64,000 nucleotides of DNA from Haliotis cracherodii (lineage: Eukaryota): assembly GCF_022045235.1 (NCBI RefSeq), contig NW_027266308.1, forward strand, positions 57,536,001 through 57,600,000, written 5' to 3'. Positions 21,682 to 56,961 of this stretch are shown piece after piece. The position numbers were made by a program, and so were the translations under genes. The stretch's first letter is position 1. Each line of letters opens with the position of its first letter. The notes below the pieces were generated by a model that saw nothing but the letters and a program-made list of their open reading frames with translations, ran no database searches and was not told the DNA's origin.

Positions 21682-22498
21682 CAGTTGAAGAAACTGTTAT
21701 TTATATTGACACTGTTGAAGAAATGGTCATTTATACTGACACTGTTGAAGAAACTGTTATTTATACTGACACTGTTGAAGAAAGTGATATTTATAATGAC
21801 ACTGTTGAAGAAACTATTATTTAGACTGGCACTGCTGAAGAAACTGTTATTTATACTAACACTTTTGAAGAAATTGTTATTTAGACTGACACTGTTTAAA
21901 CAACTGGATTTATACTGACACTGTTGAAGAAAGTGATATTTATACTGACACTGTTGAAGAAATGGTCATTTATACTGACACTGTTGAAGAAACTGTTATT
22001 TAGACTGGCACTGTTGAAGAAAGTGATATTTATACTGACACTGTTGAAGAAATGGTCGTTTATACTGACACTGTTGATGAAACTGTTATTTATATTGACA
22101 CTGTTAAAGAAACTATTATTTAGACTGACACTGCTGAAGAAACTGTTATTTATACTAACACTTTTGAAGAAATTGTTATTTAGACTGACACTGTTTAAAC
22201 AACTGGATTTATACTGACACTGTCGAAGAAACTATTATAAATACTGACACTGTTGAAGCAACTGTTATTAATACTAACCCTGTTTAAGAAAGTGTTATTT
22301 AGACTGACACTGGTGAAGCAACTGTTATTAATACTGACCCTGTTTAAGAAATTGTTATTTAGACTGACATTGTTGAAGCAACTGTTATTTATACTGACAG
22401 TGTTGAAGAAACTATTATTTATACTGACACTATTGAAGCAACTGTTTTTTATACTGACACTGTTGAAGCAACTGGTATTTATACTGACACTGTTCACG
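21682..22498. repeat. 30-bp AT-rich minisatellite
   Basis: Unit GAAGAAACTGTTATTTATACTGACACTGTT, about 27 copies. Confidence 0.95.
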
Positions 22499-25400
22499 AA
22501 AGTGGAAACGTTGTAACTCAGATGTCGTTAAAGTGGGATTAGGTGGAGATTGGATCTTCTAGTCAGGATGTGGGGAGTAGGGCGTCGGGTGGGGGGTGGG
22601 GTAGGGACCTATGATGGACACGAAGGGTCTACGGACGAAGTTAATATCAATTGGCTTACGTGGTTTGTTCTTATGTATACTACCGGTTGTGTGTGTCGAG
22701 GTGTTAATCATATGTACGTATCCCAGTATTGGTGGCAGCCTTTATTAGCTAGAGAATATATTCAGGATTTAGGTTCGTTATTGGACGTGTTTGTAGACTG
22801 GAGATTGTTGTGTATCCGAACACGGAGGGAAGAATAAAGCATAGAACTAAACCTATAGCTAATCTTTAAAACGAATCTCACCTCGTGAACCCAAGTGGTA
22901 TGTTGTTTTTAACATCAGAGCAAAGACAAATTACTACCGCCATGAGGGATGGTATAAATGCATGCAGTGGATTAAAATTCATGAATATTTCATAAGTAGG
23001 GTATTACAATACCTGGCTCCGTCTACCTCCAGTCGGTATACTATTGTGTAATGATGGCAGTTTGATGGCAGCATGTGGAGTGACTCGCAGCGGGATCATT
23101 AACGGAATTATATTATTTGTAATGGTTCATAGATTTATTGGTAGCAATGTCACGGTTGAATTACGTGAATTGACATATAATAAACGTGTTTTGTGCGTGA
23201 TCAGATGTAAATCCTACAACAGGGTGGTCCGTTATCATATGTTCATGAACAACTCCCTGTCGAAATGTGGGTGCAGTATATGACTCGGTGGGCATTGGCG
23301 TGTGGGGTGACTAAAAGGGGATTGCGTGGTCACAATGGATCATCACTGTGGACAGTACAAGGTGACCACTTGAAAAGGCTAACTCGTCACTTACTTCGAG
23401 CGACCATTACATAATTAGATTAAGAGTGGGCTTTGTGAAATATAATACAGTCACTATACAATTTCGTCCTCGGTTTGTTTTGCGAGACACTTTTATCAAG
23501 ATGTAGTGCTACTGATGTGAGAATTTCAGTGTGACGTGTTTAGACCACGTGTTACTTTCAGTCTTCCAGCCTTATATTATGACTTGATGGCTATCATTAA
23601 AATGGGTCGTTAGACAGTTAAACCTATTGAAAACTTATGCCCACGCAGAATGTGTGTGCACAAGAGATGTTATGAAAGTTTTTTCGCCGTCTAGTGTTTT
23701 ATTGGTTAACGAACCCACCGATTCTAAAGAAATCAGGATTGTGAAAATAAGAAAACAAACAATGACGCTAAAAGTTTATTATTCTGTTTCAAGCACAGCT
23801 TAAGTAGCTTAAGACAATATTCATAAACCCACTAATTATCAAATAAGGCCTCATAAGAAAACGTTGTACTGTAAACAAGCCTGTCTTACATCAAGACACT
23901 GCCAATTTAGCTGATGAACGCACATGGCCTGACAGGTAAAATGGAACGAGGAAACACACTTCAAAATAATTCAAGAAAACACAATTCAATACCGTCTTTA
24001 GTCTAGAACTCAATATTTTGAAATATTGACTTGAATGCATAGCACAACATGAGTATCTTTATAAGCCCACCTTAACAATTAGGCCACATACCCTGAATGT
24101 GTATATGGTAATAATTTGTAATTAATGAATGGACGATGGATATATTAAAAACAACGATTTGTTTAAAATTGGTTTGCCACTTGCGATATATTTACTGATA
24201 TCATGATTTATTTGTATTTAGCAAGCAGTAAACACGAGAAGAACTATAGAGGGAACATATCAAAAATACTGTCTACATTTTTTTAGCAGATTGATGAATT
24301 TCTTATCACTGACCTGGCTGACCGATTTCACTGTTTGAGCCTTCTTTCAAGAAATATACAACTGCTTGTTTGTTCTAAGCCTTGTTTATTGCAGGGTGTT
24401 CTAGATAACAAGGCCGGCTGATTGAGTGCCAATTGAACCACACTTACTGCAGTGACAGGGAGCTTTCTACAGACATTTGTCATAGAACAGTCCTCTTAAA
24501 CACTCCAGTATGATTAGAAATTATGACTGCGGGTGTCGCCAGTTGCCGGGTGGTCGCACAGAGCTTATCTCACTCTATCATCAAAATGGGTATAGTTTCA
24601 ACTACGGGAATACGTATCGGGTTTATTCATCACACACAAAATACGTCCTCGAATGAATATTTGTTATATGCAGCACACTATGAATATAGTGTTATATCTA
24701 ATTACTGGATTTTTTAAAAACACAGTGATAGTGTTTCGTTAACTAATATATACGTGACACACTATAAGACATAATTAAGTGATTTAAAGTGTTATACAAA
24801 AATACCAGCTAAGTTTTGTGTTTGTTTAATTTGTTTGACTGCTGTTAACACCACTCTCTGCAATATTCCAGCTATATCATAGCGGCTTGTAAATATTCAG
24901 TTATGGACCAGACAAACCAGTGATTGATATTGGGATCATAGCCCTTCGTCGTCAGGGCACGATGACATGCTATCAGTCAAGTCACAGAGCCTGGCTACCC
25001 GATCCATTACTCGCCGCGTATGAGAAGCGTAGGTTCCTGGAACCCGTATCTACCAAGGTATCCCCCCATACCCTTTCACATTGAAGTAATCTCACCTTGG
25101 AATCCCCTAGTATCAGCCAGTGTAACGACAAGAGAGTATATGCAAGGTACCGTGACGTAACCTTAACAATTCCTTCATGCGGATTACGAATGATAAATTC
25201 TCAACAAGACGGTTCGAATACCTTAATACCTTCACGAGGGCTTAATTCCATTATATACACCTATACACTGTCGTCAAACTACATATAAGTGTGCATGTTA
25301 CCCGCACAGTATTCCGGCCCAGGTACATGTCCGTACACGGTTGTTTCAATACAACACACTCGACAGTTGGTATTGATACCGACAAGTAATTTCACCGGCA

Positions 25401-27781: not shown

Positions 27782-27933
27782 GGGGGCGGTCGGGTAGCCT
27801 AGTGGTTAAAGCGTTCGCTCGTCACGCCGAAGACCCGGGTTCGATTCCCGACATGGGTACAATGTGTGAAGCCCATTTCTGGTGTCCCCCGCCATGATAT
27901 TGCTAAAAGCGGCGTAAAAACCATGCTCACTCA
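27782..27933 (+). mobile_element. SINE family A (tRNA-Asp-like head, (CACT)n tail)
   Basis: A box TAGCCTAGTGG, B box GGTTCGATTCC; TSD TTCAGATGAGTAGG at 27770 and 27934. Confidence 0.85.
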
Positions 27934-28910: not shown

Positions 28911-30306
28911 TATAGAAAAGAGATCCCATGTAGCACCATCTCGCTATTACGACCATATGATTCTCCACAAAATGCACGCATCTTCTCAAGCATTTTTCAA
29001 AGCATTTAAAGAAACTGGGAGCATCCCATACATTGATTGACTTCAAACATCCCTTGAAAGTTACGGTAAACTTAGTTAAGTCAAACACCATTCATCCAAG
29101 GTGTTGCCAGGGTTGCGCGGGTTGCCCATTCGTCTACTGCGGCGTCACCTCGGCATTCAAGAAAACTCTGATACAGTTCAAAGCAGCGTTAAACCCAACT
29201 CACTCACTCACTCACTCGTATGTTCCTTTGACATCGAATTACCGTAGTTTATGTGTCACTTTTTACACAGACATTGAATCACTGTTGTTATAAAACACAT
29301 TTGAACATATATTTGCTTATAATTCTTTGTCAACAAATGTGATGATTTGGGCAAAATGCCAAACGTCGCGATGACACTGGAGCGAGTTTACACAATCAGA
29401 CCACTTAACAACGTTCTTCAGGTGGAGTATTTGTCATCGAAGGGAGATAATACAGCCTTGTAATTGCCTGCCTACCGCTAATCGCTGCTGAATCTACTGA
29501 CTGGGCTTGTTCTATCACCCCTCTTGAAGACAAGTGTCTGTCTACTGCCGTTGACATAGACTTGACGCACCGCATAACACACCCGATCACTGTTGTCTCG
29601 CTGTACAGACATGCCATTGTTGCTATACTGTGTGTCTTAAGGGATTTGATTTTACACTGAAGACATGCTCAGAATTTCACTTTATTAGTTACGTGTTGTG
29701 TTTCATTTATAGGGCATATATTAGGGTCGACGGACAATCAATATCAGGCTTTAAGACGAGGAGTATCACAGGTCTTCTTGTAAAAAGTGACATTTTTATA
29801 TATCATCGCTCTAGTTTCGCGTGTATCATTTCAGGTGAGCTCCAAGACAGGACAGTGGACATGTGAGTCATTCATCATGGAGGGGCTTACCTTCGCCCCG
29901 GTCCTGGTTCGAACCCGGGTGTTTGACCAGATGTGGTTCAAGTCACACCACCCTCGGGATTGCGGGTAGCCGTTCTCAGATCCGGAGGCATTGGAAAAGC
30001 AGCACCAATAAATGTGGTTTTTGTGAAAGAAACATTTAAAACATGGATTTATCTACATATAGATGTATTGTATGATTCCATATACAGTCGAACCCCCTGA
30101 CTGGAACTCACATGTGTCGAATCCCCGGTTGTGTCGAGTTCACAGTCCGGTCCCGGCACACTCTCACTATATTTATCACTACGTTAATCTGGATGAGTCG
30201 AACTGGATGTGTCAAATTCCCGGTTATCTCGAACACAATTTAAAGAGTTGAAAGAAGATAAAACTTACATTGGATTTGGGGGTCAGTAAGTCTCCCAGAA
30301 CTAAGA

Positions 30307-31007
30307 ATGGCCTTCAACACAACTGACATTACAACCCTCCAAGGGGAGTACTCGTCCCCCCTCAACTCTGTCCTCATCTTGTTCACAGTCGTGGGGGTAG
30401 TGTTGAACTTCGCGTCCATCCTTGTGAAGCTCCTGCTAAAGTTCGCTATGCCCCACACGTGGAAACTGTCCTGTCTTCTACTGGACGTGTCTCACTTCAC
30501 TCTGGGACTAGGTCTAGCGTTGTTGCTCTGTTATATCAGGTTCCAGGCGGAGAGTTTATGTAAAGCAGCAGGGTTCTTTCTCATGGTCGGCGTCCTTGAC
30601 TGCGTCAGCGTCTACCTCATATCCAACGTCATCATCCTATTTGTGCAATACCCAGAAAAGCTATCGGGGTATTCCCATTACCCAAAATGGACTATTCCAG
30701 CCATGTTGGTCCCGGAGAAGGCGTTCACTCTCCTACTCGCCCTCTTCCCCTTCCTCCCCATCCACTACTTCAACGACAACGACGACCCCTACGTGATCAC
30801 CTGTCTCCCCGTCCGGGAGACTAACGCCAAGGGAGCGGGGTATGGTGCCGCGTTGATGTTCATCTCTTGGATAGTCCTCAGCATTGCCGTCATCGTCTGC
30901 ATGGTGACCACGTTCAGACTGTGGAAGAGCTCCGGAGGGAGGATCCACGCCTCATCTCCGAACATCTGGCAGATGATGATGCTGAGTCAGGGCAAGACGT
31001 ATCAGAG
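30307..31007 (+). CDS. Exon 1 of the 7TM-pseudokinase gene (TM1-TM5)
   Basis: ATG 30307; N-glycosylation sequon NTT at residue 4; TM3 starts LCKAAGFF; ECL2 contains TCLPV (LGR/RXFP-like disulfide Cys pair); donor AG|GTTTGT after 31007. An upstream coding exon cannot be excluded because the frame is open back to 30262. Confidence 0.85.
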
Positions 31008-34000
31008 GTTTGTCTTTAATGTTTTCTTTTAAATTTGTGTTGGTGTGTATGTTCCTTGCCATTTGTCAACTCCCAATGCAATAACAGGTTTATCTCAAAG
31101 ATTAGGTGGTGCGATAAAATGGGGTTTTACGTCGCGTTCGAGATTATTGCCCTTACATAGCGACATCCTTGTGTGTGTGTGCGGGGTACAATGTATGAAG
31201 CATATTTCTGGTGTTCCCCGCCGTGTAATTGCTGGAATATTGCTAAAAGCAGTGTAAAACCATACTCACTGACTCACTCACTCACTCACTCGACTTCAGT
31301 TACACGCCAGACATGAGTTTATCCAAATAAACATATGCACATGTAATTACTGATATTTCCTCTACAATATACATACCTATATAATTACATTAAACCATCT
31401 CAGTATTATTTCTACTCAACAAAACCTATCAAAATACATGAGATCCCTCATATCCTATATATCCTGTCATAACGCAGATATTCACGAGCGATGCATGTCT
31501 TGTTAACATGAGTAACATTAATGCTACTTTGAAACTCCACAGCCGTGAAGGTCAGTTCCTATTGGTGGCATGGTACTAAAACATTATGATCGTGATTAAG
31601 ATACAGTCCCACTGAACATTTAACACCCTGACATATACATCCAAGTCTGCTGTATCTAATCCAGACAACTCGGCTTATTACAGGGAATTGCAAAATAGCT
31701 GTAGCATTACTGACTGCATTTAGTCATTATGCCTGCTGAAAGGTTGTGCCCTATTGTTAAGATCCTATGTATGGCCTGTGGAACAACGCCTTCATATTTG
31801 ATAGACTTAGTGAAGAAGTACCAACATGTTGGAAGCCTCAAAGCTACTAACAACTATGTGCTACAACTTTCAAATTTAAGTCTTGGATCCTTTTCCTATT
31901 CTGCACAAAGGTTGTGGAACGTTTTACCACAGGATATCAGACTTTCTGCTTCTCTCCAAGCCTTCAAGTCAAAGTTCAAAACCCCTCTCTTAGAAAAGTG
32001 TGCTGCACATCTCCTAGGTAGCGCTATGAAAAACTATTTTATTTTATTTTTTATTACTTTTACATGATAAACATGAAATGATCAAGTCCATCACCCTCTA
32101 CCTCCAAGGTTCCTCCTTTTGGAGCAGCTGGTGTGGATGGTGGTGTTGTTCATGACGACGGTCATAATCTACACCAACACATCTCGGCTGCTGGTACCTC
32201 AGTGGATCGCCGTCGTCGCCCTCAGTGTCAGCACCTTCTTCCACGCCGTCCTCAGCAACATCGTTACCATCCTCTGGAGCACCCTGTGTTGCAGGACGAA
32301 GCAACAGACCAAAGAACCCTACCAGAAGCTGAAGAAGCTGGAACTGCTGAAAATAGAGGTAGGTTGGATCGCTTTCCTTGCAAAACCTTTTGTGAATAAA
32401 GATTGTTCACAGGCTGTGAGTTGTACATAAGCAGTATATATTCAAGAAATGAAACCAATAAAGTAACATTTGGGTTTGGTTTGACAGTATGGCGCAGTAT
32501 GGCGCAGTATAGCAGACCTTTTCAGCAGAATCTGTAGATGGACACAGAGGACAAATTTAAACGATGCACTCTGATTGTCTGATTTTATTGCGTACAGACA
32601 CTACACGGCGTTGGGTGGAGGTTCTCAATAAAACGAAACTTGAACCTGGCGCCATACTATATGAAACAATGACACAGTGTACTCCATGATCCATATTTCG
32701 TTCAATATTCCACCCAGGCCCCCGGCAAGTTGCGCATGAAGGCCACGTGGTCTGTGGGTAAGGGCGTGTACAGGCGTGGTCTGCTGAAGGTGTACGGGGT
32801 GGACCACCTCAAGGCGTGGGCCCAGGAGATCGTCATCCTGGGGATGATGAGGAAGACACAGAGCGCCAGTCTGCTACAGTGTCTGTGGACCAACAGCGGC
32901 AACCCGTACTTCGAGACGATGACGCTAATCACTGGGGAGATCATCCCTGGCGAGTCAAGGTAAACACATTCCCACTTTCTCATAACTCCTCGATATGGTG
33001 CCTATTTTCTGTCTATGTCTAGCTTTTCAAATCTGTGACTTGTGTCAAACGGAGAAAGTGTCCGTTAGGGATAATCATAAACTGCTAGATTAATATTTCA
33101 TCAATTAAAATTTACAAACATGACAGGAATAAATGTGGTATGTATGGACGGTCAGTTGACCTGAGTCTGCCCTCAACTAAGGTACCGAAGTAACAATAGA
33201 CTACATGGTTGAAGCGATGTCAGCTTTCTTCCTTCTGACAGTAACTGGTCTGTCTCTAATTTGCATAATGTGGGTTTCAGTGACGTGCAACAACTTTCAG
33301 TTATTCAAGGTTTGCTCGTGTGTGTGCCGTGTCAGTTTATGTTACTAGTTTGTAAATCCTTAAAGTCTCATGTAAAAACCAACAAATGACAGTTTTACAT
33401 TGTTTCCTACGACGTTTGGTGTTTCCAATCATTACAATATGTTCCTTTCAACACACATCGTTGTTTTAAATAAGAAGCGACTAACGGGATCTGGTGGTCA
33501 GGCTCACTGTCTTGGTTGATGTATGTCATCGTATCCCAATTGCTTTGATCGATGATCATGATGTCAATCACTGGATTGTCTGGTCAAGACTCGATTGTTT
33601 ACAGACCGCCGTCATATAGCTGGAATATTGCTGAGTGCGGCGTTAAACAACAAACAACATGCTGTTTTAACTTGTGTTTTCTACACGTATTGGCGTATGA
33701 TGGTAGAGGAGTATTAGGAGACGCGAATGGGTGCATGACTATGAATAGCCAGGATGACTATCCTATAGCTCGCCAAGAATAAATGCCACATCTAATCTCA
33801 AACTGTCAACGAGAGCAGGCCTGTAAACAAAGATATTTCATAAGCTTAGACTTCTTTGGTGCATGAACACTATACCAAGATCTACATGACATGGCATAGT
33901 TTGTCTACAGTCTTATCCACTCTGCTTCGCTGCTTCAGTAATTCTCTACATTCTGATCAGATCGGGCCGTCAGTGTCGCCCGCCGCAGTGAAAGGGTTAT

Positions 34001-37000
34001 TGTTGAGACAGTGATCTTTGTAGGATATATGATCAGTAATCACCAGCCCTGTCACTGTTTGGTGTATTTGTATGATTAGCGATTGTATACTTGACACTAG
34101 AAACATATTGTCTTGAAGATAGGGTTTTCCATAATTATAAATAAAAATCCGTTGAGCTACTCGGTAAGTGCAATAGGTCGAGACAATGTATGTAGATAGA
34201 CACCGTGACCCGCGAGTACTACGCAGTGACACATGGTATATAGCAATGTGACCATTGACAAACAGACGAAGGGCCATGTTTTCACACACTGTTACACACG
34301 GTGACTAACTGCATGTCATACACTGAGTTATAGTATTATGCACAAGAAGGTTCGGACCAAGATCAGAAAATGTTATGTTCGGTCATGAATTAATGTACAA
34401 CTTTCATAAACAGTTTTACTTATTACATGAAAAACCTACCCTTGACTTCCTCCGCCTGTATTTAACAGATTTCCTGAGAACCTTTCCATTGACCACTGTG
34501 AAACCTGTTTCACTGACCTTGCTAGACATTGGCGTCAACCATTTCAAATACCTTCTTGATAACCATCATTAACAACCACTTACATTGGACGTACACCTCA
34601 ATGACTGCAATGATAATGATTCCATTGACTGCTTTCATTGACTACTCTGACAACTGTTACATAATGTACTATGACAATCATTCCTTTGACTGCTAACACA
34701 ATCATTCCTTTGACTGCTAACACAATCATTCCATTGACAGCTATGCCAATCTTTCATTGACTCCGTGACAATCATTCAATTGACTACTATGACAAAGATC
34801 CCATTAAGTACTTTGACAATCATTCCTTCGACTGCTAATACAATAATTCCTTTGACTGCTAACATAATCATTCCTTTGACTGCTATGCCAATCTTTCATT
34901 GACTACTGTAACAACCATTCCATTGACTGCTATGACAAAGATCCAATTAAGTACTATGACAATCATTCCTTTGACTGCTAACAATGATTCTTTTGCCTGC
35001 TCAAACTAATTCCTTTGACTGCTATGACAATTATTTCTATGGCGACCTTGACACCAATTCCATAGTTCCATGACAATAATTGCAATGATTTTTTTTAAAA
35101 TAGATTCTACTGACATCTTGAAACCCATCATTAAGATCTTTGTACTTTTGTGGCTTGCAGTCGATCAAATGGTTACACTTCTCGCCTTTGAAAAGTATAG
35201 CTTAACTTATGACTCGACGTATGAAAAATATGTTCAAAGGTATTCACAAAAGAATAAATCTCTCTCAGGTCCTTTTGTTAAAAGGTACCTCGACTTGTGT
35301 TCTGACCAACTGCAAAAACCATGATATCGTTCATCGAAAGTACAATGCTTAATTAAATGCAACCACTCTGCTACGGACAGCCAATTTCAAAATCAAAGGC
35401 GATCCTTCCAATGCCAGGTACCGCGTGAGAAAAAAAATTCTCACGGCATTTTTCTACCACGGAACTAGCTAAAACTTATTTCAGTCATGCATGTGTAATA
35501 TGCACACGTGAGCTAGGAAGGTGAAGAAGGGACAAGAAATAGCCCTGAGACAATAAGGAAGTTGTCATCCGTAAAAGCCTAATGTGTTAATTAAAAGTTT
35601 TCGTAAGTTTCATAGGCAAGTTGTGAAGGTATTTATCAAAAGGAAACCGTTGATCAGCGTGTATCTAACACAGGGTTTACATTGACTCTCTGTAGACTGA
35701 TCTGCTTCGAGTTCACCAACAGCGGCACCCTGGACGACTTCCTGCACCATCTGGACATACCGCTGCCGGAGCCGTGTCAGAGAACCATCATCCACGACAT
35801 CGCTGAGGGCCTCTCCTGCCTCCACAAACACAACATCCTCCACCACAAACTCACTTCCGCCTCCGTGTTCCTCAAGGGGTCCGTACAGGTGTGTGTACAG
35901 CTATCAGTCACAATATACAGTAAAACCCCGTTAATCCGGTCGGAAGGATTCCCACTGAAATCGTTCGGATTAGCAAATATCTGGATTAACGTTTGTTGCG
36001 TAAGAGGTAAAGCCACTAAATGTTCCGAGGATCCGCAGATCGTGGTAAAGATTTGAGTTGCACCCCTTAGTTATGCCAGGATCCACTGATCGTGATTTTG
36101 AATCCAATTTTCGCCTTAATTATGACCCTTGGTTTGTCAGTACCACATAGTGCTCGTGGTTTCCCAAAAGGCGAATGTCTACAACATATGTCTCTTTTCC
36201 GCCTAAACGTACCTGACACGCCGTGATATAATTGAAATACTGTTAAAAACAAACTAGCTATCTCGGGGTCTTTTCTGACATAGTTGAACGTGCATCATTA
36301 TTTAATAGAACGAGGAAACAAGAATAAATATCTCTAGTTAAAGGAAATACTTTTCTCCAAAAGAGCAAAAATAATCTGAGTGAGTGAGTGAGTACGGTTT
36401 TACGCCGCTTTTAGCAATATTCCAGCAACATCACGGCGGGGGACACCAGAAATGGGCTTCACACATTGTACCCATGTCGGGAATCGAACCCGGGACTTCG
36501 GCGTGACGAGCGATCGCTTTAACCACTAGGCTACCCGACCGCCCCAAATAATAATCTGAAATCAAATCGTCACATACGGCTACAATATAACAATACTGAT
36601 GGTGCCTTAACCTAACACAAGAACACACATCTCGTTAAACAACAACAACTTCTCGTGCTGTCTCGGGGCATGATATAGGATCACACTTTTAAGATCCAGT
36701 TCTAGAAATACGAAATTCTAGATACACATAATTGTAATGTGTTCAGATCTCTTTCAAATTTCTCAAACATGATTTTGTTTTTTTTATTTCTTCAATTGAC
36801 TGTTTTCTTGCGAATCCCTAATCACTACTAATTACATGGAACCTGAGACTTATCCCCTCTAAACGGCACCAAGAAAACGTAAATTCAGGGGAACCCGATA
36901 GCGCTAATGGTCCCCCAGATATACAACGCCCGGTGGTGTATCTACCAAATTATGCCTCGCACACTGCATTATTCCTGGGTCAATGGACAGGCTGAAAGCG

Positions 37001-40000
37001 TACAGTGGGGTCTTGTCAAAGGAGACGCTGTACACAATGCCAGCACTGCTGACGTATAGTCACTAAATCGAACCGGGAAGATAGGGTTTTCTGGCATGTT
37101 TCCAGCACAAGCATGGCGGGGTACCTGCATGTAGGGGATAGAGGAGAGGGGTGGGTGCCGAGGAGAGGGGTAGGTGCCGAGGGTAGGGGAGGGCCAAATG
37201 GATCTTTCAGGGACGGGCCAAGTAAAAGGTAGGATAAGGGTCATATTTACCGCACGGGATCGGCATCATTTAAGAAAAACTTAGGATTTGTTCATTTGGA
37301 TAAATGACATCGTTAAATGGATAGATACGTAGAAAAGGATAAAATGTGTCAAACAGACCGATTTTATAGGTTAACATTTGAACATGAGGAAGTCTTTGAA
37401 CCAAGCTCATTTTCATAGATGCACATAAAAGACACAAAAAGATGTACAAAAATATGGTAACACATTGACTAGCTCATGACGTGAAGTCTGCCCTTTTTAC
37501 ACACATCAGCAATATTTGCGTGTAAGAAATAGGCCAGTTGCCATTTGAATATGTCTAAGTTATATACTAATAGTTCAAAGTTTTCTGCAACTGTTAAATT
37601 AAACATTTCCAGCTGGCCAAAAAGAGCTATTATCCCACATGCCCAGGGAGAGATGGGGGCGCCGGTGGCCCGCTCGTCTGAGGCGTCGCAATTTGCTGTG
37701 TAGAGTTGCGTCCCTTGGGCACGCCAGAAACCTATGATTGTGATCTCGAATCCCAGTCCGCCCCCGTTATGTTTCTAGGTTTGTCAGAACCATACCTGTG
37801 CTCGTGGGTTTCACCAAAGTGGTAAACGTCTGGGACCTGCATCACTTCGAGCTCTCCTCCCACACTATGCTGACACGCCGTGATATGACAGGAATACTGT
37901 TTCATCAATTAATCACTCTATTTCTAAAAAAAACACCCACGGTGGTAATAGTTTGGAAGATGATGCAAATTTGCATTTTACAAGATGTCGGTTATACTGC
38001 ACAAACATCTGGCGACATCTAAACATTTTGCTTGACACAGTCAGAATCAAAGGTTTTTGTCTATTATGCATATGAATTTTGCAGGGTTGTTTTTTTTTAA
38101 AATTGGAATTCTGGTATACAGTAATATTTCTGTATTTTATGATATTAGGATACTGCGTATATTTATATGACAAACATTTGGATATGAATTCATGGAAAGC
38201 TTCACATTTAAACAGGTAGTGGAGTTCATCGGTGATAGCTGGCGGCATACACAGTTTACCATGTCCTTAATTCTCTATCAATACCACGCCACCGGCCCAC
38301 TTTGACAGGTAGATTATGCTTACAAGTTTTATATTTCAGAATAGGATAATAAATTTGTATAGATAGGAGAAGAAAGTTTTCCAATGACGGGATATCTTTT
38401 AAGTATTGATAATAATACCGTTTTGAATTTTTCTCGATGTCATATCTCCAATTTTGATAAAACTGATCTTTTAAAGTCCTTCCACCTGAGCAATTAGCAA
38501 CTGGCTTAAAACGCTTTATGGGTCATAAAATACATTGGATAGACCAATAAATTAAATATTTGCCTGGTATTTCTTATCCAGATATTTTATTGATTATCAG
38601 ATAAAAATTGCCAAATGAGCCAACTTAGGGATAAGTTGCGATAAATTCGGTGCAGGTCCGGGTTAACTAAGTTTATGCCAGAAGCCAACTACCAGTTTAG
38701 CTGCATAAATCGATAAGGGTACCTACCTAGTTCTCCAGACCCTTGAAGATCCGGGGTAGAATAGGTCTTCAATAACCCATGCTTGCCGTACAAGGTGACT
38801 ATGCTTGTCGTTAGAGGCGACTAAACGGAAGGGGTGGTCAGGATGGCTGACTTGGTTGATAAATGTTATCGAATCCCAATTGCGTGGATCGGTGATCATG
38901 ATGTCTGGTCCAGACTCGATTATTTACAGCCCGCCGTCATATAGCTGGAATAGTGCTGAGTGCGGCGTTAAACAACAAATCAATCAATCAATCACAATAG
39001 AACGTCCGTACCTTTGGTTTGTCTGAATAATGAAAATCGGGTGGTCATAACTTACAACATAGACTTGCTGTGTCATCTTGTTTGCCCGGATGGTATGGAA
39101 CATTGATCAATGTAAGTCTACTGAAACTCGATTATGTACAGGTCAAACAACAAACAAACAAACAAACAAACCTAGTTCTCCATAAAACCATAAAATTTGG
39201 GGTTGCATTTCTAAGACCACAGGGGGCACGGGGGGCCCAGTCGTGTAAGGCGCCGCGATTCGCTGTGTAGAGTTGCGTCCCTTGGGCACGCCAGAAACCT
39301 AAGATTGTGTGGAATCCCGGTTTGCCCCGAATATGTCTCTAGGTTTGTCAGCAACATATCCCTGCTCGTGGGTTTCATCGAAGGGGTAAACGTCTGAGAC
39401 CTGCATCACTTCGGGCTTTCCTCCCACATTTTGCTGACACGCCGCGATATGACTAGAATACTGTTAAAAGCGGCGTTAAGCCCAACTCACTCACTCACTC
39501 ACTCACTCACTCACTCACTCTAAGACCACAATCTAGTTTAAGGAATGTTGAATGAATCTTTTCTATTATGGTCAAATTTTCGTATACCCATAAATCACAG
39601 CCCAAAAATAATGTTGTTGATATTTACATCAAAGGCCCTATGTTCAAAGCGGCGTTAAACCCAATTCAATTCATTTTTGGAGATCGGAGGAAAACAGGAG
39701 AGTTTTTAGGAACGGAGATAGAGGTAGACGCCAAGACATTCGAACACTCCATATAAGGAAGTGATGTATCGATAATCTTTTGAATACGAGAAACCGCCAA
39801 AAAGAAACATGAAGTATTAAGTTCGAGAACCTACACTCTCGAATCTGTAAATTGTACCGTACGGACATCGGGTTTTCAAGCTATTACTATTTTTACTATT
39901 TTTACTTTGACTTTAATACTGTATGTGAATTTATTTCGGTCTATAACAGTGATATGTGCCAAACGAAACAAATTCATACGTTTAGTCTTTCAAGACCCAG

Positions 40001-43000
40001 CGCATATTATTCGCGTCTTCGTGTATCTACGTTATCACAAGGCTCTGTCAGCTTTAGATTCAAATCCTTTTTCAAGATTGCTATTTACACACAATTCGAG
40101 TTTGAAGATTAAATCCCTTTTTTTCTTGTAACTCTCCTATCATCCCATAGTAAATCTTTCCTCGATTACCCCACAGTGGCGCAGCGCCACCTGCCGGCCC
40201 TGACCTGCTCCGCCAATGTATGTATTGTCTACGCCCACAGGTAACCTACACTGCTGAAATATCAGGAGATCAAAACATGACTGGGATTCCCAAGGAGTGA
40301 TCTATCTGTCTAAGTTCAATATCAGTAACCTTATCTGATGTATTGCCAATATACTTTTCCGAATAGGCTGAAAACACAACCCTTTGTGTAAATAGAGCTT
40401 TGAGAGTATTACGGGATAAAAGTGAAGTGTTGTTATCAAGAACTGAGGATATATTTTTCCTACTGTTGTATTAACAAATCCCTGATAAATTGTTATCTTT
40501 ATATTGTCAGGGTGGCATTAAGATTATTGCACAGTTATACCCCATGAGATTGTTGTTGTTAAACCACGGACATATCGAGAACCCGTTGGAATTCCGGAGG
40601 AAAATAAGTCCCCATTTTCAAGGCTTGTCATAAAAGCTGACTAAAGAGAATTTGATGGTTAGGTTCGGTGACCTTACTTGTCATTGCTTTGTTTGTTTGT
40701 TTGTTTGTTTGTTGTTCAACGCCGCACTCAGTAATTTTACAGCTATATGACGGCGGTCTGTGAAATAATCGAGTCTGGACCAGACAATCCAGTGATTGAC
40801 ATCATGAGCATCGATCCACGCAATTGGGATCGATGACATGTATCAACCAAGTCAGCGAGCCTGACCACCCGATCCCGTTTGTCGCCTTTTACGACAAGCA
40901 TAGTCACCTTTTACGGCAAGCATGGCTTGCTGAAGACCTATTCTACCCCGGAATCTTCACGGGTCTACTTGTCATTGCAGCGATCGTTGCTCATGATGTC
41001 CCGGGCGGCTTAAACAACATTCCCACATTCACATTAGGAGATCAACATCTTATTTTTATATACACAAAAAGGAAGAGTACACACAAAGTGTCCCATCATT
41101 ACGTAGCCTCAATCTTAAAAGTAATTCCACATAGTGCTCGTTATTTTTGTTATAATATTCTGCTTGTATTAATTGATCTGTCGTCCAAGGAAAGTCATGA
41201 GTCACCACTTTTCGTAAGAAAAAGATATACATACATACTGATGGAGTGAGTCAGTGAGTGAATATGGTTTTACGCCGCTTTTAGCAATCAGAAATGGGCT
41301 TCACACATTGTACCCATGTCGGGAATCGAACCCGGATCTTCGGCGTGACGAGCGACCGCTTTAACCACTAGGCTACCCGACCGCCCCTATACTGATGGAA
41401 AGAAATAAGGGAACACTTAGTTTTAGACACCGTTAAATGATGTGACATCATGGGTTCCACGCCTTGGAAACAATGCACACAAACACATCTCAACATTTGA
41501 TTCTGACATGTGTTTAATTTGTATGCGCGCTATTTCAAAGTAATGAAAGAGAAGCTAATTTTCTAATATTTTTTATTGTTCCCTTATTCGTTTCCATCAA
41601 TAAATGAAGAAAAGAAGGACAGAAAGGTGTTCATGATTACTTTCTTTATGGGATCAATGTAAACGTTTCAACATGACTGTGTGTATCTTGCAGTGCATGG
41701 TGTTGCGAGCAGCTCTTGGCGACTTCGAAGCTGCCCAGATCTATGGCTCACTACAAGGTGGCTCATCGTCCAGCTCACAGGTCAGCAAGAAACAGTTCTT
41801 CCTCCCGGACATACGGGCATTTGCTCTCGTTGCCTTGGAGATAATTGGATACGTGTGCAAAAAGAGAGAGGATGAAAAACAGCCATTCAGAAAAACCCGA
41901 AGTGAGATTGTGATAAGCTCCCAGAAAAGTGGCAATCCAAAATCCCGTGAATCTGTACAAGACCTGGCACATAAATCCCGTAGTTTAGACGAACGAGCTA
42001 TTCTAGGAGAAACTGGATTAAATAATATTCCTCCATTTGGTTCTCTAGTAAATGTGAAAGAAGTTGATCCACACCCCAACGTTCCGGAGGAACAAGATGC
42101 ATGGGCACAACCTGTGACGTCTGTAAGGATTACAGGTAAACGTAGTGATGCGGGACAGTCTGAGCATGATCACTTTAGTCGACATGCTACTGATGATGGA
42201 CGCTGGCAGAAGGGGAGTGTTCCTTATAACTCCCCTAAAGGACATGCCCAGGATACACCCACGCCAGTGTTCAGGGCGGAACCTCCACTATATGAACATG
42301 ATTATGAGGAGATAGAAGAAATCACGGAACAAATCCAAAGAGATCAAATTGTCATTCAGCAAATCCGTTACCCACGAAAAGATGACAATAGGTCAGATGA
42401 AAGGTCCTGGCGAGATTATCCGAGCGGTGCGCATTATTCGGTACCTGCAGATGTAAGTAATCCTCGTTTCATTGACCAGACTCAGAAACCTAATTTACCC
42501 AATAGGAACGCAGTAGGAGGAGGAGGCGTGTTTTTCAGGTCAGACCCGCTCCGGTACTCAGCCTCCTCTGTCAGTACCTTGGAGGACATCGAGGAGGACC
42601 TCCCGGAGGTGACTGGGGGAGGCGAACATGTTGCTGCCACCTTGAAGGATCTATGGCTCAAAAAGGAGGCAGATAAGAAGGAACGGTTACTGACATCCTA
42701 CAATGAGAGAATGAAAAAGGAGTTGAAAGATGTGTTTTCCAGGAGGAACAGAAAGAGGAAAGACCAGGGCGTGTCCAGAGAGACAGTGCAGGAAATCTCG
42801 CGACCTTTGTCAGCACGGAGTTACCACGACAATGGCACAACTGTTGTTGTTCCATTCAGTGGAGGTGAAAAGGAGACACATTTTGGTGATAGTAGACAGA
42901 AAAGACCACAAACTGCTCGACCCGCTCAACGGCAGATGTCTGAAGGATCGGGTAAGCCTGTGCCTCGGCGTCCTGCACCTCCACCACCACCACGGCCTGT

Positions 43001-45692
43001 GACAGCAGCAGCCACGACTCGTCCTCAAACACCAAGTCACGGAATAAAGAAAGCACAGGCTAGAACAAAACTTAAAAAAGTATTGGGGCAGAAGCAAAGT
43101 TCTGTTTTAACCAATGCCAACTTAAACAATACTCGGGGTCAGGGTGCATCCATTGTTGAAATGAAGTACGCATCAGTGAAAAAGATTCCCCAAATAAAAG
43201 ACTCCTTCAAAGGTTCTGAGGCTGATATGGATTGTGAACGCCTGCCACCTCCGCGTCCACAAACTGTTCATCCCAAACCTCCTAAAGTTGGGCATTTTTC
43301 CAGTTTCAGCAGCAATGATAGTCTAGGCAGCAGTTTCTATAAGCACTCTCCCAGGAAGGCAGACGTGTCCCTTACCAGCGGAGAGCTCACGTCCTTGTCC
43401 TCTCAGGCAGATACAACTCTACCTGAGCACGATGTGGAGGACGTCATTGAACTTCCTCCAACGTACGAGACTAAAGGTGCACAAAAGGGGGGAAAGATTA
43501 TTGATAGTGGCTTTGATAGTGCATCTATTGCAAGCGAGAATTCTTGCGATGTTTCCATGGTTGACGAAAGGTCCTGTTCCTGTCCATCTGGAAGCTACAC
43601 GACTGATACGTGTAGCTGCCAGTGTTCCATCACACCAACATCAGGCATGCATACCAAACCACTGTATGACAGACGGACATCATGGAGTAAAACCGATTCG
43701 TTTTCATCCTATGACTCTACAGACCTGGATCAAAAGCTTGAGAGACTCCGTAATGGAGATGTGCGTCCTTCAAAGGATGTGATTGGTCCAGATGAACAGT
43801 ACCCTATGATGGCTGCTGCAGCCAAGTCTAAGACTGCTCATCCAACACAGTGCAGTCCACACCAAAATAAGAAACATCTTGGTAAAGTTGTGACCAAGAC
43901 CCAGCGCACGAGGAGACATGATTTCGGATCGGCGAGCAAACGCTACAAGGAACTCCGAAAGAAGGGCATTCCTCTGAGAGTGTCTGTTGTATCCAGTGCA
44001 TCGTCCCAGGATGTGTCTGATGCCACAGATTGGGACTCATACATGGAATCTACAGCTGAGGTCATTGAAGAGGAGGACGACAGTGTTATTGATGATAATG
44101 ATGATGCAATTTTCAATGCTCTTGACTCGCAAGGGGTCTTTGAACCCTCAGACACTGATTCCTCCATGGGTGTGAGACCTCTGCACCACACGAGGCCCGT
44201 GGCAGTGGTACATGGAACCAAAAGACCTCGCGATACAGACAATAGAACCAATGCAATGATCCTAGAAGATATTATCCGTGAACTACCTGATGAAATAACT
44301 GGGGCATCTTCAATGGATGATGAAACACAGTCTTTCCTGCATCACTCTGAACCTAAAGCTGAATTCAAAGATGAGGAGGAGATTGTGGACATGGCTATAG
44401 AGATTCCGTATAAGCCATCGTCAGTCGTGGATGCGGAGTTAGTTATTGACAGACTGTTCACAAAGAGGAATACGCTGAAACACAAGGGAAGCCTTCAGGA
44501 TGTGATGGACCCTATTCTAGGGTTTGATGAAAATCTTATCAGAGAGTTAGCCAGCCCCACGTCTTCCTCTGGTAGGCAGACGGACCTCCCTGTACAGATG
44601 TTGAAGGGAGTGACTAAGACCCATGTGCAGGCGTGTAAGGAACTGTCCAGTAAGGTTCCATTGGTGCCCTTCTCGGAATTGTTTCCTGCTACTAATGGTC
44701 AGTTCAGGGTACTCAGGTCAAGACTAGAGCAGGTGGGAAACTTTGGAACAATTGGGAAGCAGGTGAGTCCACTCTACATGCCTCAAACATGGCTTATCAC
44801 ATACTGACAACACCTTTCAAGTAAAATACAGTTACAACTTTCATGTAAAGTTATTCTAATTCCACAGTCCCTTTGGTAGATATAGGGAGATCTGCACTGG
44901 AGGCCGTACTCAGCAACATTCCAGCTATATGACGGCGGTCTGTAAATAATCGAGTCTGGACCAGACAATCCAGTGATTGATATTATGAGCATCGATCCAC
45001 GCATTTGGGATACGATGGCATGCATCAACCAAGTGAACGATCCCGTTAGTCACCTCATACGACAAGCACAGTCGCCTTTTACGGCAAGCATGGGTTATGG
45101 AGCGCAGATAGTCCTGATATACATAAGACGCATTTTTCTGGTTGTAGTTTTGATGTTGGTATCCATGCCCCTACGTGCACGTTGCGCTCTACATCCCTGG
45201 TGAGCCTTAAGGGGTAGCCTAGTGGTTAACGTTTTCACTCGTCACGCCGGAGGTCCGGGTTCGCTTCCCCCATTTACTCTCTGACTATTTAATTTCGAAA
45301 TATGTCTTCTTTTTTAACTGGTTATGTATCAGAAATATGTTTGTTGGTTTTCAGGTGTATATTAATGAGTGAGTGAGTATGGTTTTATGCCGCTTTTAGC
45401 AATATTCTAGCAATATCATGGCGGGGGACACCACAAGTGGGCTTCACACATTGTGTCCATGTCGGGAATCGATCCCGGGTCTTCGGCTTGACGAGCGAAC
45501 GCTTTAACCACTAGGCTATCCGACCGCCCTCGGGTGTATATTAAGCATTATCCTTACAATACATGTTTTACATGTAACGATCTGTTTCAGCTGTTGGACT
45601 GTGTCCAGCTGTGTTGGGTGAGTGACAGTCCGCCCTCGGCGTCCGAGCTGGTCAGTAGACTACTGGACACAGTCACGGAGACTGAACTCTGA
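30307..45692 (+). CDS. Spliced gene for a 7TM receptor-like/pseudokinase fusion protein, 1518 aa: join(30307..31007,32109..32358,32718..32959,35696..35888,41694..44762,45591..45692)
   Basis: Six exons with GT..AG boundaries and matching phases (2,0,2,0,0). Total 4557 nt = 1518 codons + TGA. Exons 1-2 give seven hydrophobic helices; exons 2/3-6 give kinase subdomains in the correct order. Confidence 0.85.
31740..32020 (+). mobile_element. L2/CR1-group LINE 3' fragment in intron 1
   Basis: PSYLIDL..SFSYSAQRLWNVLPQDIR..SLQAFKSKFKT is a typical L2/CR1 ORF2 C-terminus. Confidence 0.7.
32109..32358 (+). CDS. Exon 2 of the 7TM-pseudokinase gene (TM6, TM7, CC motif, linker)
   Basis: Acceptor ctacctccaag|G completes an Arg codon; encodes FLLLEQLVWMVVLFMTTVIIY and WIAVVALSVSTFFHAVLSNIVTILWSTLCC; donor GAG|GTAGGT. 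Confidence 0.85.
32718..32959 (+). CDS. Exon 3 of the 7TM-pseudokinase gene (kinase N-lobe)
   Basis: Acceptor ccacccag|GCC; GLLKVY (VAIK-type Lys, 32787), KAWAQEIVIL (alphaC Glu, 32826), SLLQCLW (HxNIL-equivalent); donor AG|GTAAAC. Confidence 0.82.
33471..33659 (+). mobile_element. 5'-truncated family B copy
   Basis: Matches the 3' two-thirds of B. Other partial or old copies at ~24825-25050, 44900-45096, 48806-49040 and 57605-57790. Confidence 0.75.
34600..35075. repeat. Degenerate ~23-bp minisatellite in intron 3
   Basis: ACAATCATTCCTTTGACTGCTA(TG) repeats. Confidence 0.8.
35696..35888 (+). CDS. Exon 4 of the 7TM-pseudokinase gene (hinge, alphaE, degenerate catalytic loop)
   Basis: Acceptor ctctgtag|A; LICFEFTNSGTLDDFL and DIAEGLSCLHKHNILHHKLTSASVFL match kinase subdomains V-VIb; donor CAG|GTGTGT. 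Confidence 0.88.
36378..36545 (-). mobile_element. SINE family A
   Basis: Reverse copy; TSD AATAATCTGA at 36370 and 36550. Confidence 0.85.
37654..37900 (+). mobile_element. SINE family C
   Basis: Matches the 39222 copy. Further copies at 2647-2899 (-), 3193-3366 (+), 14655-14889 (+) and 36130-36250 (partial). Confidence 0.8.
38090..38620 (-). mobile_element. Decayed LINE 3' fragment
   Basis: DELHYLFKC..YPNIIK resembles the same CCHC tail; AT-rich and degenerate; limits approximate. Confidence 0.55.
38738..38993 (+). mobile_element. SINE-like family B
   Basis: GACCCTTGAAGATCCGGGGTAGAATAGG...GCGGCGTTAAACAAC followed by (AATC)n. Confidence 0.85.
39222..39519 (+). mobile_element. SINE family C (tRNA-Leu-like head with a long A-B box spacer)
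   Basis: TSD CTAAGACCACA at 39211 and 39520; (CACT)n tail. Confidence 0.85.
40182..40198 (-). promoter_or_regulatory. Candidate CTCF site in intron 4
   Basis: Reverse strand reads GCCGGCAGGTGGCGCTG, one mismatch from the CCASYAGRKGGCRC core. Confidence 0.3.
40688..40965 (-). mobile_element. SINE-like family B inserted in an older B relic
   Basis: 13-bp TSD TACTTGTCATTGC at 40675 and 40966. Confidence 0.88.
41246..41387 (-). mobile_element. SINE family A (internal deletion)
   Basis: TSD ATACTGATGGA at 41235 and 41389. Confidence 0.85.
41694..44762 (+). CDS. Exon 5 (3069 bp) of the 7TM-pseudokinase gene: DFE, alphaF, then a ~930-aa low-complexity insert
   Basis: Acceptor atcttgcag|TGC; RAALGDFEAA (subdomain VII) and PDIRAFALVALEII (subdomain IX); 1023 stop-free codons; donor CAG|GTGAGT. 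Confidence 0.88.
45366..45529 (-). mobile_element. SINE family A
   Basis: TSD GGTGTATATTAA at 45354 and 45533. Confidence 0.85.
45591..45692 (+). CDS. Terminal exon 6 of the 7TM-pseudokinase gene (subdomain XI and ETEL tail)
   Basis: Acceptor ctgtttcag|CTG in phase 0; reads LLDCVQLCWVSDSPPSASELVSRLLDTVTETEL*, matching the kinase CW..P..RPS motif. This frame is not in the ORF track. Confidence 0.82.
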   Translation: MLDCVQLCWVSDSPPSASELVSRLLDTVTETEL

Positions 45693-50882: not shown

Positions 50883-51195
50883 TGAGTAGAATTTATGACG
50901 CTTTCTGCACTATTCCAGTGAGTGAGGTTTTACACCGCTTTTAGCAATATTCCAGCAATTCCAGCGGGGGACACCACAAATGGGCTTCACACATTGTACC
51001 CATGTCGGGAATCGAACCCGGGTCTTCGACGTGACGAGTGAACGCCTTAACCACTAGGCTAACTGACCGCCCGCACTATTCCAGCCATATCACAGCATGG
51101 AGACAACAGAAATATTTTGCACCCACATGGGAAATCAAATCCACATCTTCAGCGCAACATACCAACATTTAACCAATAGGTTACCCCACCACCCC
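50883..51195 (-). mobile_element. Young SINE A (50919-51072) nested in an older SINE A copy
   Basis: TSD GCACTATTCCAG at 50907 and 51073 splits a diverged copy of the same family. Confidence 0.8.
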
Positions 51196-53661: not shown

Positions 53662-54443
53662 GCTCCAACTTGCCCCATTATAACACAAGCTGCACCTGAA
53701 CTTCACAGCACCACCTGCCCCTTCATAACACAAGCTGCACCTGAACTTCACAGCACCACTTGCCCCATTATAACACAAGCTGTACCTGAACCTTACTGCA
53801 CCACTTGCCCCATTATAACACAAGCTGTACCTGAACTTCACAGCCCCACTTGCCCCATTATAACACAAGCAGTACCTGAACCTCACGGCACCATTTGCCC
53901 CATTATAACACAAGCTGTACCTGAACCTCACGGCACCACTTGCCCCATTATAACGCAAGCTGTACCTGAACTTCACAGCACCACTTGCCCCATTATAACG
54001 CAAGCTGTACCTGAACCTCACAGCACCACTTGCCCCATTATAACGCAAGCTGTACCTGAACTTCACAGCACCACTTGCCCCATTATAACGCAAGCTGTAC
54101 CTGAACTTCACAGCACCACTTGCCCCATTATAACACAAGCTGCACCTCACGGCACCGCTGCCCCACTTCACAATCTGTCCCTGAATGAGTACTCAGGGCA
54201 CCACTGCCCTGCTTTAACACAATCTGCCCCTGAAGCTCACAGCACATCTTGCCCTGCTATAACACAAGCTGCCCCTGAACCTCATGACACCACTGCCCCC
54301 AATAACACAATCTGCCCCTGAAGCTCACAGCACATCTTGCCCCGTTATAACACAAGCTGCCCCTGAACCTCATGGCACCACTGCCCCCAATAACACAATC
54401 TGCCCCTGAAGCTCACAGCACATCTTGCCCTGCTATAACACAA
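53662..54443. repeat. 45-bp minisatellite downstream of the BTBD9 stop
   Basis: Unit CACTTGCCCCATTATAACACAAGCTGTACCTGAACTTCACAGCAC, with diverged units at the right end. Confidence 0.92.
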
Positions 54444-56570: not shown

Positions 56571-56961
56571 TCAGTGCTCCACATCCATCCGATCAGCTTC
56601 GGGTGCATCTTGCTGTGAGTAGTCTGGTCCTGCGTAAATGTCAAGAACAGGGTGCTGTGGACTGCGGCGAGGGCTCCTCTGGGATCTGTTTGGGCTGATG
56701 CCCTGCCCCCCCTCCGCTCCCTGGAGCCGCTGGGGGCTGGGCTGACTGGAGGGAGCATTAGACACACTGGGGCTCGGGGGGCTGTTCGGGGGACCCACAG
56801 TGAGCGAGACATTGGCTACAGAGTTGCTGAGAGAGCTGAGAGAAGTATCGGCTGGACATTCAAAGTGCACACAGTGGAACACTTCATTTGCGGTGTTGTG
56901 AGTGCCAACAATCCTGACAAAGGCAATTGGTTCAGGTTCAAAGGTGATGGTCTGCCAGGAT
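56571..56961 (-). CDS. BTBD9: BTBD9 last coding exon
   Basis: cttcag|A TCC TGG; SWQTITFEPEPIAFVRIVGTHNTANEVFHCVHFECP, then a Ser/Pro-rich tail and stop at 56571. Confidence 0.93.

Follow-up and report, generated by a model that had tools for sequence, protein, structure and literature searches.

The window, a 64,000-nucleotide stretch of the Haliotis cracherodii genome (contig NW_027266308.1, positions 57,536,001 to 57,600,000 of the forward strand, assembly GCF_022045235.1), carries at positions 30307-45692 a gene that is real, expressed and transcribed into one messenger RNA encoding both a seven-transmembrane (7TM) domain and a kinase-like domain. The N-terminal ~300 aa are modeled as a divergent 7TM of class A, i.e. 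of the rhodopsin fold, and the attached kinase domain is, judged by its residue pattern, a long-standing pseudokinase. Ever since the classes of molluscs separated, purifying selection has acted on the 7TM, the tethered dead kinase, its insert and a PDZ-type end. The architecture class, a kinase fused to a GPCR (G-protein-coupled receptor), is already known; what is new is that a conserved member spans three classes of one bilaterian phylum, that its receptor half is class A and LGR-like and that its kinase half is both dead and split. We favor, at a probability of roughly 0.6, a membrane receptor-scaffold, in which the 7TM would sense and the tethered pseudokinase, insert and PDZ-type end would signal without canonical G-protein activation.

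Gene model and transcription

An open frame of 3.1 kb (41673-44807) shares 98% identity with the NCBI entry 'uncharacterized protein LOC124140967' from Haliotis rufescens (P0001, 1515 aa). Searching the window with P0001 by tblastn returned six collinear blocks, from which, together with inspection of the splice sites, the exon limits were set (Table 1). All six exons lie on the + strand, the introns are bounded by GT and AG throughout, none of the exons contains an internal stop, and the summed coding sequence of 4557 nt corresponds to 1518 aa plus the stop codon. The first in-frame Met of exon 1 is preceded by a stop, and no runs of N were found in the window. A sequence-only reading of this DNA had proposed such a chain of 1518 aa from six in-frame exons, and the tblastn blocks and splice sites match it; its junction of 32358 with 32718 is exact in position, and the CC motif it described is present as WSTLCC (32275-32292), a likely palmitoylation site.

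Transcription was assessed with contigs from four public runs placed on 30200-36100. The 'RNA' type of a run is a predicted label; the decisive feature is the presence of contigs without introns. In contigs of three transcript-like runs, which come from three organisms and three studies, exons 1 to 4 appear as adjacent blocks with the introns skipped. Two of these contigs cover all four exons (X1 record 1, 5637 nt; X5 record 15, 1067 nt), and a further one joins exons 2 to 4 (X6 record 20, 1128 nt). RNA across exons 2 and 3 is thereby documented in all three, each joining 32358 directly to 32718. Contigs of the DNA-like run X15 were placed on intron sequence, and no spliced contig occurs among its listed pieces. 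The region 5' of the ATG continues unspliced into exon 1 in the transcript-like contigs, which argues against a hidden exon for an ectodomain. Additionally, a full-length, oyster-like chain of 1738 aa (P0030), running from the 7TM to ETEL, is encoded on a contig of 6232 nt, which therefore leaves no room for introns.

Introns 1 and 3 contain very high-copy repeats that resemble short interspersed elements (31185-31381 and 33352-33745, respectively). Their summed contig depth amounts to 1e5-1e6 in each of the four runs, whether DNA or RNA, and they translate to recurring '...SGPDSIIYSPPSYSWN.AECGVKQQ' pseudo open reading frames (ORFs). Similar ORF artefacts are found at 38805-39026 and 44783-45028 (-). 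The repeats explain most of the spurious joints that arise when contigs are placed on the window.

The receptor half and the kinase half

Hydropathy reveals seven segments at residues ~22-40, 56-74, 87-112, 132-152, 182-200, 236-254 and 267-295, all of which are conserved in the orthologs. Five short ORFs (P0039, P0043, P0045, P0046 and P0048) consist of exons 1 and 2 joined and then read through into intron 2, and each comprises the whole 7TM. The AlphaFold2 model of one of them, P0039, shows seven helices at a predicted local distance difference test score (pLDDT) of 80.7 and a predicted template modeling score of 0.81, in line with the seven transmembrane (TM) helices that had been read from the letters. 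Foldseek returned 179 PDB matches for this model at E<=1e-3; the best 50 of the 179 are all class A GPCRs at probability 1.00 and include FSHR, TSHR, LGR4, LHCGR and RXFP1, with FSHR, TSHR and LGR4 near the top. VIA-align likewise places LGR4 first, with a Z of 24.2 and a root-mean-square deviation of 2.9 Å over 245 residues, but further class A receptors score close behind it, at Z 21-24.

An alignment (A1) of the short mollusc 7TM ORFs with a second group of 7TM-only ORFs, described below, was used as a profile. Against the PDB its best match is RXFP1, at E 2.7e-5 over TM3-TM7, and the next matches lie above E 0.01. Against the abalone genome it finds, beyond the gene itself, only two ORFs (C1:26099383-26099901 and C23:61021528-61022235; E 9e-12 and 2e-3), which match Pfam 7tm_1 at E 2.5e-21 and 3e-27. 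It is only by motif that these two look LGR/RXFP-like; within this genome they are the sequences most closely related to the 7TM of the fusion. The cysteines of TM3 and of extracellular loop 2 (ECL2), C86 and C166 in P0039 numbering, are invariant in 18 aligned sequences. Most orthologs carry an N-glycosylation sequon inside their first ten residues and begin ~10-25 aa ahead of TM1; with an N-terminus of ~20 aa, neither the gene nor its orthologs show a leucine-rich-repeat (LRR) or LDLa ectodomain.

The classical activation motifs are absent from the ortholog alignments. In place of E/DRY, TM3 ends in LFVQYPEK, with the consensus IQNPGK (Q-N/Y-P-G/E-K); instead of NPxxY, TM7 reads H...S....MWS.CCC; and CWxP is missing from the 7TM domain. 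Pfam assigned no family to the single translations of exons 1, 2, 3 and 5, and no 7TM family to the full-length orthologs, for which 7tm_1 stays below significance. The second-group relatives match 7tm_1 at sub-threshold E values of 0.0025-0.014. Because no Pfam 7TM model recognizes the receptor half, the fusion has been overlooked. Taken together, the 7TM is probably of LGR/RXFP ancestry, shorn of its ectodomain and activation switches. Searches of the ESM Atlas gave leads without indicating a single family: the 7TM part reached only 0.86 at best (clusters of TMEM116, GPR141 and cAMP-receptor-like proteins), and P0057, a second-group ORF, generic GPCR-like clusters at 0.94-0.96.

The kinase part was matched by Pfam from exon 4 alone (PF07714, E 2.5e-7, 30.7 bits at a cut-off of 23.1). 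P0001 reaches 28.2 bits with the same family (cut-off 23.1) and the ortholog P0031 36.3 bits with PF00069 (cut-off 31.7); full-length orthologs match both families at E 1e-6 to 5e-9, over profile positions ~45-160 only. The best PDB sequence matches of the core are LRRK2 (E 1e-5), RIPK1 (~1e-3) and MLKL (2e-3), each over ~80 residues and at low identity. By sequence, the kinase part is thus like the tyrosine kinase-like (TKL) group, with no family assignable.

Residues 303-520 form the best-conserved stretch of the protein in an alignment of 24 orthologs, and the 7TM is less conserved. Three residues, assigned by alignment pattern and not from a confident structure, are invariant in 24 of 24, namely the beta3 Lys in GL[LM]KVY, the alphaC Glu in WAQEI and, within D-F-E, the Asp. 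In every one of the orthologs the HRD Asp is replaced by N, K or H (HHK in Haliotis) and the catalytic Asn by S, A, C, T or R. The Gly of DFG is invariably Glu, and the Gly-rich loop is degenerate. With the catalytic Asp and Asn both gone and DFG reading DFE, we classify the domain as a pseudokinase, which may still bind nucleotide.

An AlphaFold2 model of the Solemya fragment P0049, which extends from TM3 to alphaF and part of the insert, has a mean pLDDT of 48.5; its order of three strands, a helix, and later a helix, two strands and a long helix is compatible with a kinase and is not counted as evidence. The segment KLKKLELLKIE is predicted to be helical in AlphaFold2 models of orthologs, and the first strands (KLRMKATW...) fall into exon 3. 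This corrects the sequence-only reading, which had taken KLELLKIE for the first kinase strand and placed it in exon 2, and which had counted a ~20-aa linker where the distance from CC to the first kinase strand measures ~25 aa. Its further claim, that kinase subdomains I to XI follow in order, may hold in part; the Gly-rich loop is degenerate, and subdomain XI (LLDCVQLCW...PPS) is recognized by motif only, with weak docking.

After alphaF, the C-lobe is split by an insert of ~900 aa, which reaches up to ~1300 in bivalves and is poorly conserved. In the AlphaFold2 model of an ortholog it is disordered, with a pLDDT of ~30-35 and no secondary structure. A conservation map nevertheless yields consensus motifs within it, namely K..AR..LK, FSSFSS.DS, D.SLTSGE..SLSSQA and DSGFDS, as well as RYRELxKKGVPLRVS, L(E/D).IIRE.P.E and V.DAEL.IDR.FS. 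DSGFDS fits what we take to be the DSGxxS phosphodegron pattern of beta-TrCP. The last ~90 residues are conserved again (LLPA ... LLD...CW...PPS..L..QL.D.V.ETEL) and look like kinase subdomains X-XI. When the tail (1415-1515) was modeled on the core (305-525), ipSAE values of 0.46, 0.50 and 0.75 were obtained (median 0.50; three controls at 0.00), which rates as weak support, with contacts that agree in at least 42% and a partner pLDDT of at least 52; among 78 solved complexes 51 reach that mark, as do 2 among 108 mismatched pairs, and a value no higher than 0.60 misleads more often than not if the pairing was not already likely. Across the phylum the chain ends in T-E-L, T-E-V or T-T-V, presumably a class I PDZ-ligand pattern.

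Distribution, relatives and other features of the window

A protein search with residues 1-520 of P0001 retrieved 32 full-length proteins, all of them molluscan; the weakest has an E of 1e-79, and the gap from there to 1e-3 is empty. They include gastropods (Haliotis, Gigantopelta, Patella, Littorina, Nucella, Babylonia, Aplysia, Biomphalaria and Physella) and bivalves (Mytilus, the scallops Pecten, Argopecten and Mizuhopecten, Saccostrea, Pinctada, Dreissena, Mya, Mactra, Mercenaria, Solemya and Sinanodonta). When exon 1 was searched exhaustively with HMMER through 1.84 billion representatives, no more than 29 proteins emerged, one of them a cephalopod member from Argonauta hians (P0050). The same layout is present in named models of more than 25 mollusc species, comprising gastropods, bivalves and one cephalopod; one of these orthologs has been automatically named 'LRRK2' at NCBI.

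In a maximum-likelihood tree of the conserved parts, the gastropods are recovered with support of 100/99, as are their major subgroups and the bivalve subgroups, and the cephalopod sits on a long branch. The gene tree agrees with the taxonomy. Within the 1.18-Gb abalone genome, exon 3 has no match beyond itself, and exon 4 has two further matches, both weak, generic kinase hits. On these sequence comparisons, the abalone gene is the ortholog of H. rufescens LOC124140967, single-copy and vertically inherited, and was presumably already present in the common ancestor that gastropods, bivalves and cephalopods share.

The second group of 7TM-only ORFs mentioned above (P0052-P0064, P0073 and P0074; 330-450 aa) stems from ENA, Logan and JGI assemblies. 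They are distant relatives of the mollusc 7TM, with E values to exon 1 of 5e-11 to 8e-4, and have its fold-defining residues. Each stops just after a motif similar to KLxxLxKL; the read-through there is of the Q|V type and resembles a splice donor, near the position of the mollusc intron 2. A profile search of the abalone genome found no paralog of this ORF type, and a search with P0057 found only three relatives. These ORFs may be receptor exons of homologous genes in other phyla, with kinase exons possibly downstream.

Fusions of GPCRs to kinases, called 'GPCR-bigrams', are known from oomycetes and amoebozoans (PMC6033456, PMC5784254), as the sequence-only reading had rightly stated. That list was incomplete, since GPCR-TKL/K proteins also occur in acanthoecid choanoflagellates and GPCR-tyrosine kinase (TK) proteins in sponges (PMC12716839), and further fusions are described in ciliates, with TK-type ones in sea urchins and Felidae (PMC10463195). 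The most recent survey limits those of Holozoa to choanoflagellates and sponges, argues for repeated, independent origin, and states that none of the bigram proteins has been functionally characterized (PMC12716839). Like them, the mollusc fusion places an N-terminal 7TM ahead of a cytoplasmic protein-kinase fold in one polypeptide, with a TKL-like kinase. It differs, in a comparison by architecture and not by domain homology, in being bilaterian and in its class A, LGR/RXFP-like 7TM; moreover, its kinase is dead and split by a disordered insert of ~900-1300 aa, and the chain ends in a PDZ ligand.

The LGR and relaxin-family receptors (RXFP1, LGR4, TSHR and FSHR), which provide the best sequence and fold matches of the mollusc 7TM, share its TM3-ECL2 cysteines, and an ECL2 motif (YF..C.P.) is common to the fusion and the abalone's own LGR-like ORFs. 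In contrast to these receptors, the fusion has no LRR or LDLa ectodomain, DRY/ERW, CWxP or NPxxY motif or 7tm_1 match, and its cytoplasmic tail is a pseudokinase. Among the TKL proteins that match the core best, MLKL likewise is without catalytic residues. Unlike LRRK2, RIPK1 and MLKL, the mollusc protein has no ROC-COR, LRR, death or 4-helix-bundle domains, is embedded by a 7TM and has a split C-lobe. A functional analogy is offered by receptor guanylyl cyclases with their kinase-homology domain and by ErbB3, ROR and RYK, where a pseudokinase beneath the membrane acts as allosteric relay or scaffold. Those receptors are single-pass with large ectodomains, whereas the mollusc protein is seven-pass and has neither an ectodomain nor a downstream catalytic domain. 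A literature search found no description of a mollusc 7TM-pseudokinase family, and an oyster kinome paper makes no mention of it; with the NCBI label 'uncharacterized protein' and no Pfam 7TM match, this agrees with the first impression that the protein belongs to no named family.

Table 1. Exons and motifs of the 7TM-pseudokinase gene (window coordinates).
Feature	Position	Strand	Content or remark
Exon 1	30307-31007	+	start codon, short extracellular N-terminus, TM1-TM5; ends phase 2, GT donor
Exon 1, N-glycosylation sequon NTT	30316-30324	+	
Exon 1, TM3 Cys (LCKAAGFF)	30556-30579	+	
Exon 1, ECL2 Cys (ITCLPVR)	30796-30816	+	
Exon 1, conserved motif of intracellular loop 3 (ICL3), GRIHASSPNIWQ	30937-30972	+	
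Exon 2	32109-32358	+	TM6, TM7, WSTLCC, juxtamembrane segment
Exon 2, WSTLCC (CC motif)	32275-32292	+	
Exon 2, conserved juxtamembrane KLKKLELLKIE	32326-32358	+	
Exon 3	32718-32959	+	kinase N-lobe, Gly-rich loop degenerate
Exon 3, beta3 Lys kept (GLLKVYG)	32778-32798	+	
Exon 3, alphaC Glu kept (WAQEIV)	32817-32834	+	
Exon 4	35696-35888	+	hinge, alphaD-alphaE, catalytic loop
Exon 4, catalytic loop ILHHKLTSAS	35835-35864	+	HHK for HRD; catalytic Asp and Asn both gone
Exon 5	41694-44762	+	activation segment, alphaF, ~900-aa disordered insert, alphaG-like region
Exon 5, GDFE replacing DFG	41718-41729	+	
Exon 5, alphaF (FFLPDIRAFALVALEI)	41796-41843	+	
Exon 5, insert motif KAQARTKLKKVL	43050-43085	+	
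Exon 5, insert motif FSSFSSNDS	43296-43322	+	
Exon 5, insert motif DVSLTSGELTSLSSQA	43362-43409	+	
Exon 5, insert motif DSGFDS	43503-43520	+	
Exon 5, insert motif RYKELRKKGIPLRVS	43941-43985	+	
Exon 5, insert motif LEDIIRELPDE	44262-44294	+	
Exon 5, insert motif VVDAELVIDRLF	44424-44459	+	
Exon 5, alphaG-like region (LFPAT)	44679-44693	+	
Exon 6	45591-45692	+	kinase C-lobe end, C-terminus, TGA stop included
Exon 6, LLDCVQLCW	45591-45617	+	C-lobe end
Exon 6, SPPSASELV	45627-45653	+	C-lobe end
Exon 6, C-terminal ETEL	45678-45689	+	class I PDZ-ligand pattern

Elsewhere in the window, five minisatellites lie at 11795-12753, 15447-16705, 18404-20698, 21684-22501 and 53668-54444, with units of 45, 61, 47, 30 and 45 nt, respectively, in 17-47 copies. 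The one of 47 nt is C-rich and accounts for a GC-skew trough of -0.69 at 18-20 kb, and several of them produce long artefactual ORFs. In a retroelement at 61210-63875 (-), the reverse-transcriptase ORF (PF00078, E 1e-20) overlaps a second one that carries a phage-integrase SAM-like domain (E 3e-4), which suggests a DIRS-like tyrosine-recombinase retrotransposon; the element contains a 138-nt tandem duplication at 62194-62471. An Rfam scan of the window gave only two borderline tRNA matches, both outside the gene (27788-27859 (+) and 51005-51061 (-); 30 bits versus a gathering score of 29), which are probably tRNA-derived repeat heads and not tRNA genes. Finally, an ORF of 169 aa at 56571-57080 (-) has a tail rich in Ser and Pro and matches nothing in Pfam; it may represent an exon that belongs to a neighboring gene on the opposite strand.

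Proposed mechanism and its meaning

From the membrane inward, the parts of the predicted protein follow in the order of a glycosylatable N-terminus, the 7TM, a helical juxtamembrane segment of ~25 aa, the TKL-like pseudokinase with the insert between alphaF and the last C-lobe helices, and the PDZ-type ligand. In the receptor-scaffold that we favor, the 7TM would sense a small ligand or a membrane state, and the conformational change would pass directly to the tethered pseudokinase, which would serve as an allosteric switch or docking module and not as an enzyme. The disordered insert would recruit partners and be regulated by phosphorylation, through kinases and ubiquitin ligases, with DSGFDS as a candidate beta-TrCP phosphodegron-like site alongside several Ser clusters. 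The PDZ ligand would anchor the protein to PDZ scaffolds at a membrane subdomain, and signaling would be independent of canonical G-protein activation. Ligand sensing, the scaffold function and these motif roles we infer from the layout described above, for which the term 'one-component receptor' seems reasonable. A bolder version would make the protein the first one-component GPCR of a bilaterian, namely a class A receptor with G-protein coupling lost and a pseudokinase scaffold attached, whose family is perhaps older and wider than Mollusca; this is conceivable and at present rather doubtful.

Several points weigh against the favored reading. The LGR/RXFP affinity is marginal, with other class A receptors within ~1-3 Z and Pfam 7tm_1 not significant, and the absence of DRY and NPxxY was judged from alignments and helix ends rather than from superposed structures with numbered residues. 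In the P0049 model the kinase part has a pLDDT of 40-70, too low to confirm the whole kinase fold structurally, and the predicted docking of the tail on the kinase core would support it weakly. Some kinases that are devoid of canonical residues do catalyze, as the WNK, CASK and haspin-type exceptions illustrate; the pseudokinase call is based on motifs, and the kept Lys, Glu and DFG Asp would permit nucleotide binding. The degron and PDZ readings, in turn, are pattern matches interpreted from general knowledge.

An unlikely alternative is a membrane-tethered scaffold that does not sense, with the 7TM as a degenerate GPCR relic that acts as anchor or sorting device and all signaling in the pseudokinase, insert and PDZ ligand. 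The ~20-aa N-terminus without an ectodomain, the missing DRY and NPxxY, the lower conservation of the 7TM relative to residues 303-520 and the lack of any matching Pfam 7TM family would all suit such a protein. However, three mollusc classes have kept the fold of the 7TM, its TM3-ECL2 disulfide cysteines and, in ECL2, the motif YF...C.P.R, ICL3 (RIHASSPN.WQ) is conserved too, and an anchor needs neither seven helices nor a conserved extracellular loop.

We consider it distinctly less probable that the protein is a true 7TM receptor kinase, in which an atypical active kinase would bind ATP via the kept Lys, Glu and DFG Asp and transfer phosphate in a non-canonical manner. The invariance of these three residues in the 24 orthologs is what such a kinase would show, but the catalytic Asp (N, K or H) and Asn (S, A, C, T or R) are replaced in each of them, the Gly-rich loop is degenerate and the DFG Gly is invariably Glu. 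The Asp position has been freely variable since the classes diverged, which fits a relaxed constraint on catalysis.

Highly improbable, in our view, is a conventional GPCR that signals through G proteins or arrestins and whose long regulatory tail of pseudokinase and insert modulates trafficking or desensitization. Its class A fold is closest to LGR/RXFP, a group in which RXFP1, TSHR and FSHR are Gs-coupled, and the Ser/Thr clusters of the insert resemble arrestin phospho-barcodes; yet TM3 ends in Q-N/Y-P in place of DRY, TM7 has no NPxxY, and the best-conserved part is the pseudokinase rather than the receptor core. The reading of a separate 7TM gene and kinase gene wrongly merged by annotation or assembly, for which one might invoke the long, repeat-bearing introns 3 and 4 (2.7 and 5.8 kb) and the automatic prediction of public gene models, was rejected and is hardly tenable, as the sequence-only reading had anticipated: spliced contigs from three independent studies cross every junction from exon 1 to 4, exon 3 lacks a start codon of its own and carries on from exon 2 in phase 0, and the same chain recurs in more than 25 species and in transcript contigs free of introns, such as that of P0030.

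In animals, nearly all receptor kinases cross the membrane once, and GPCRs rely for their signaling on separate G proteins, GPCR kinases and arrestins. The receptor-scaffold proposed here is a single-copy fusion that gastropods, bivalves and a cephalopod share and whose dead kinase is under strong purifying selection, and direct coupling of a 7TM to a pseudokinase would therefore represent a stable signaling design in bilaterians. It would provide a natural system for studying how a kinase fold reads the conformational change of a 7TM without G proteins, and it adds a new orphan receptor to species of interest in aquaculture and neurobiology, among them abalone, oysters, Aplysia and cephalopods.

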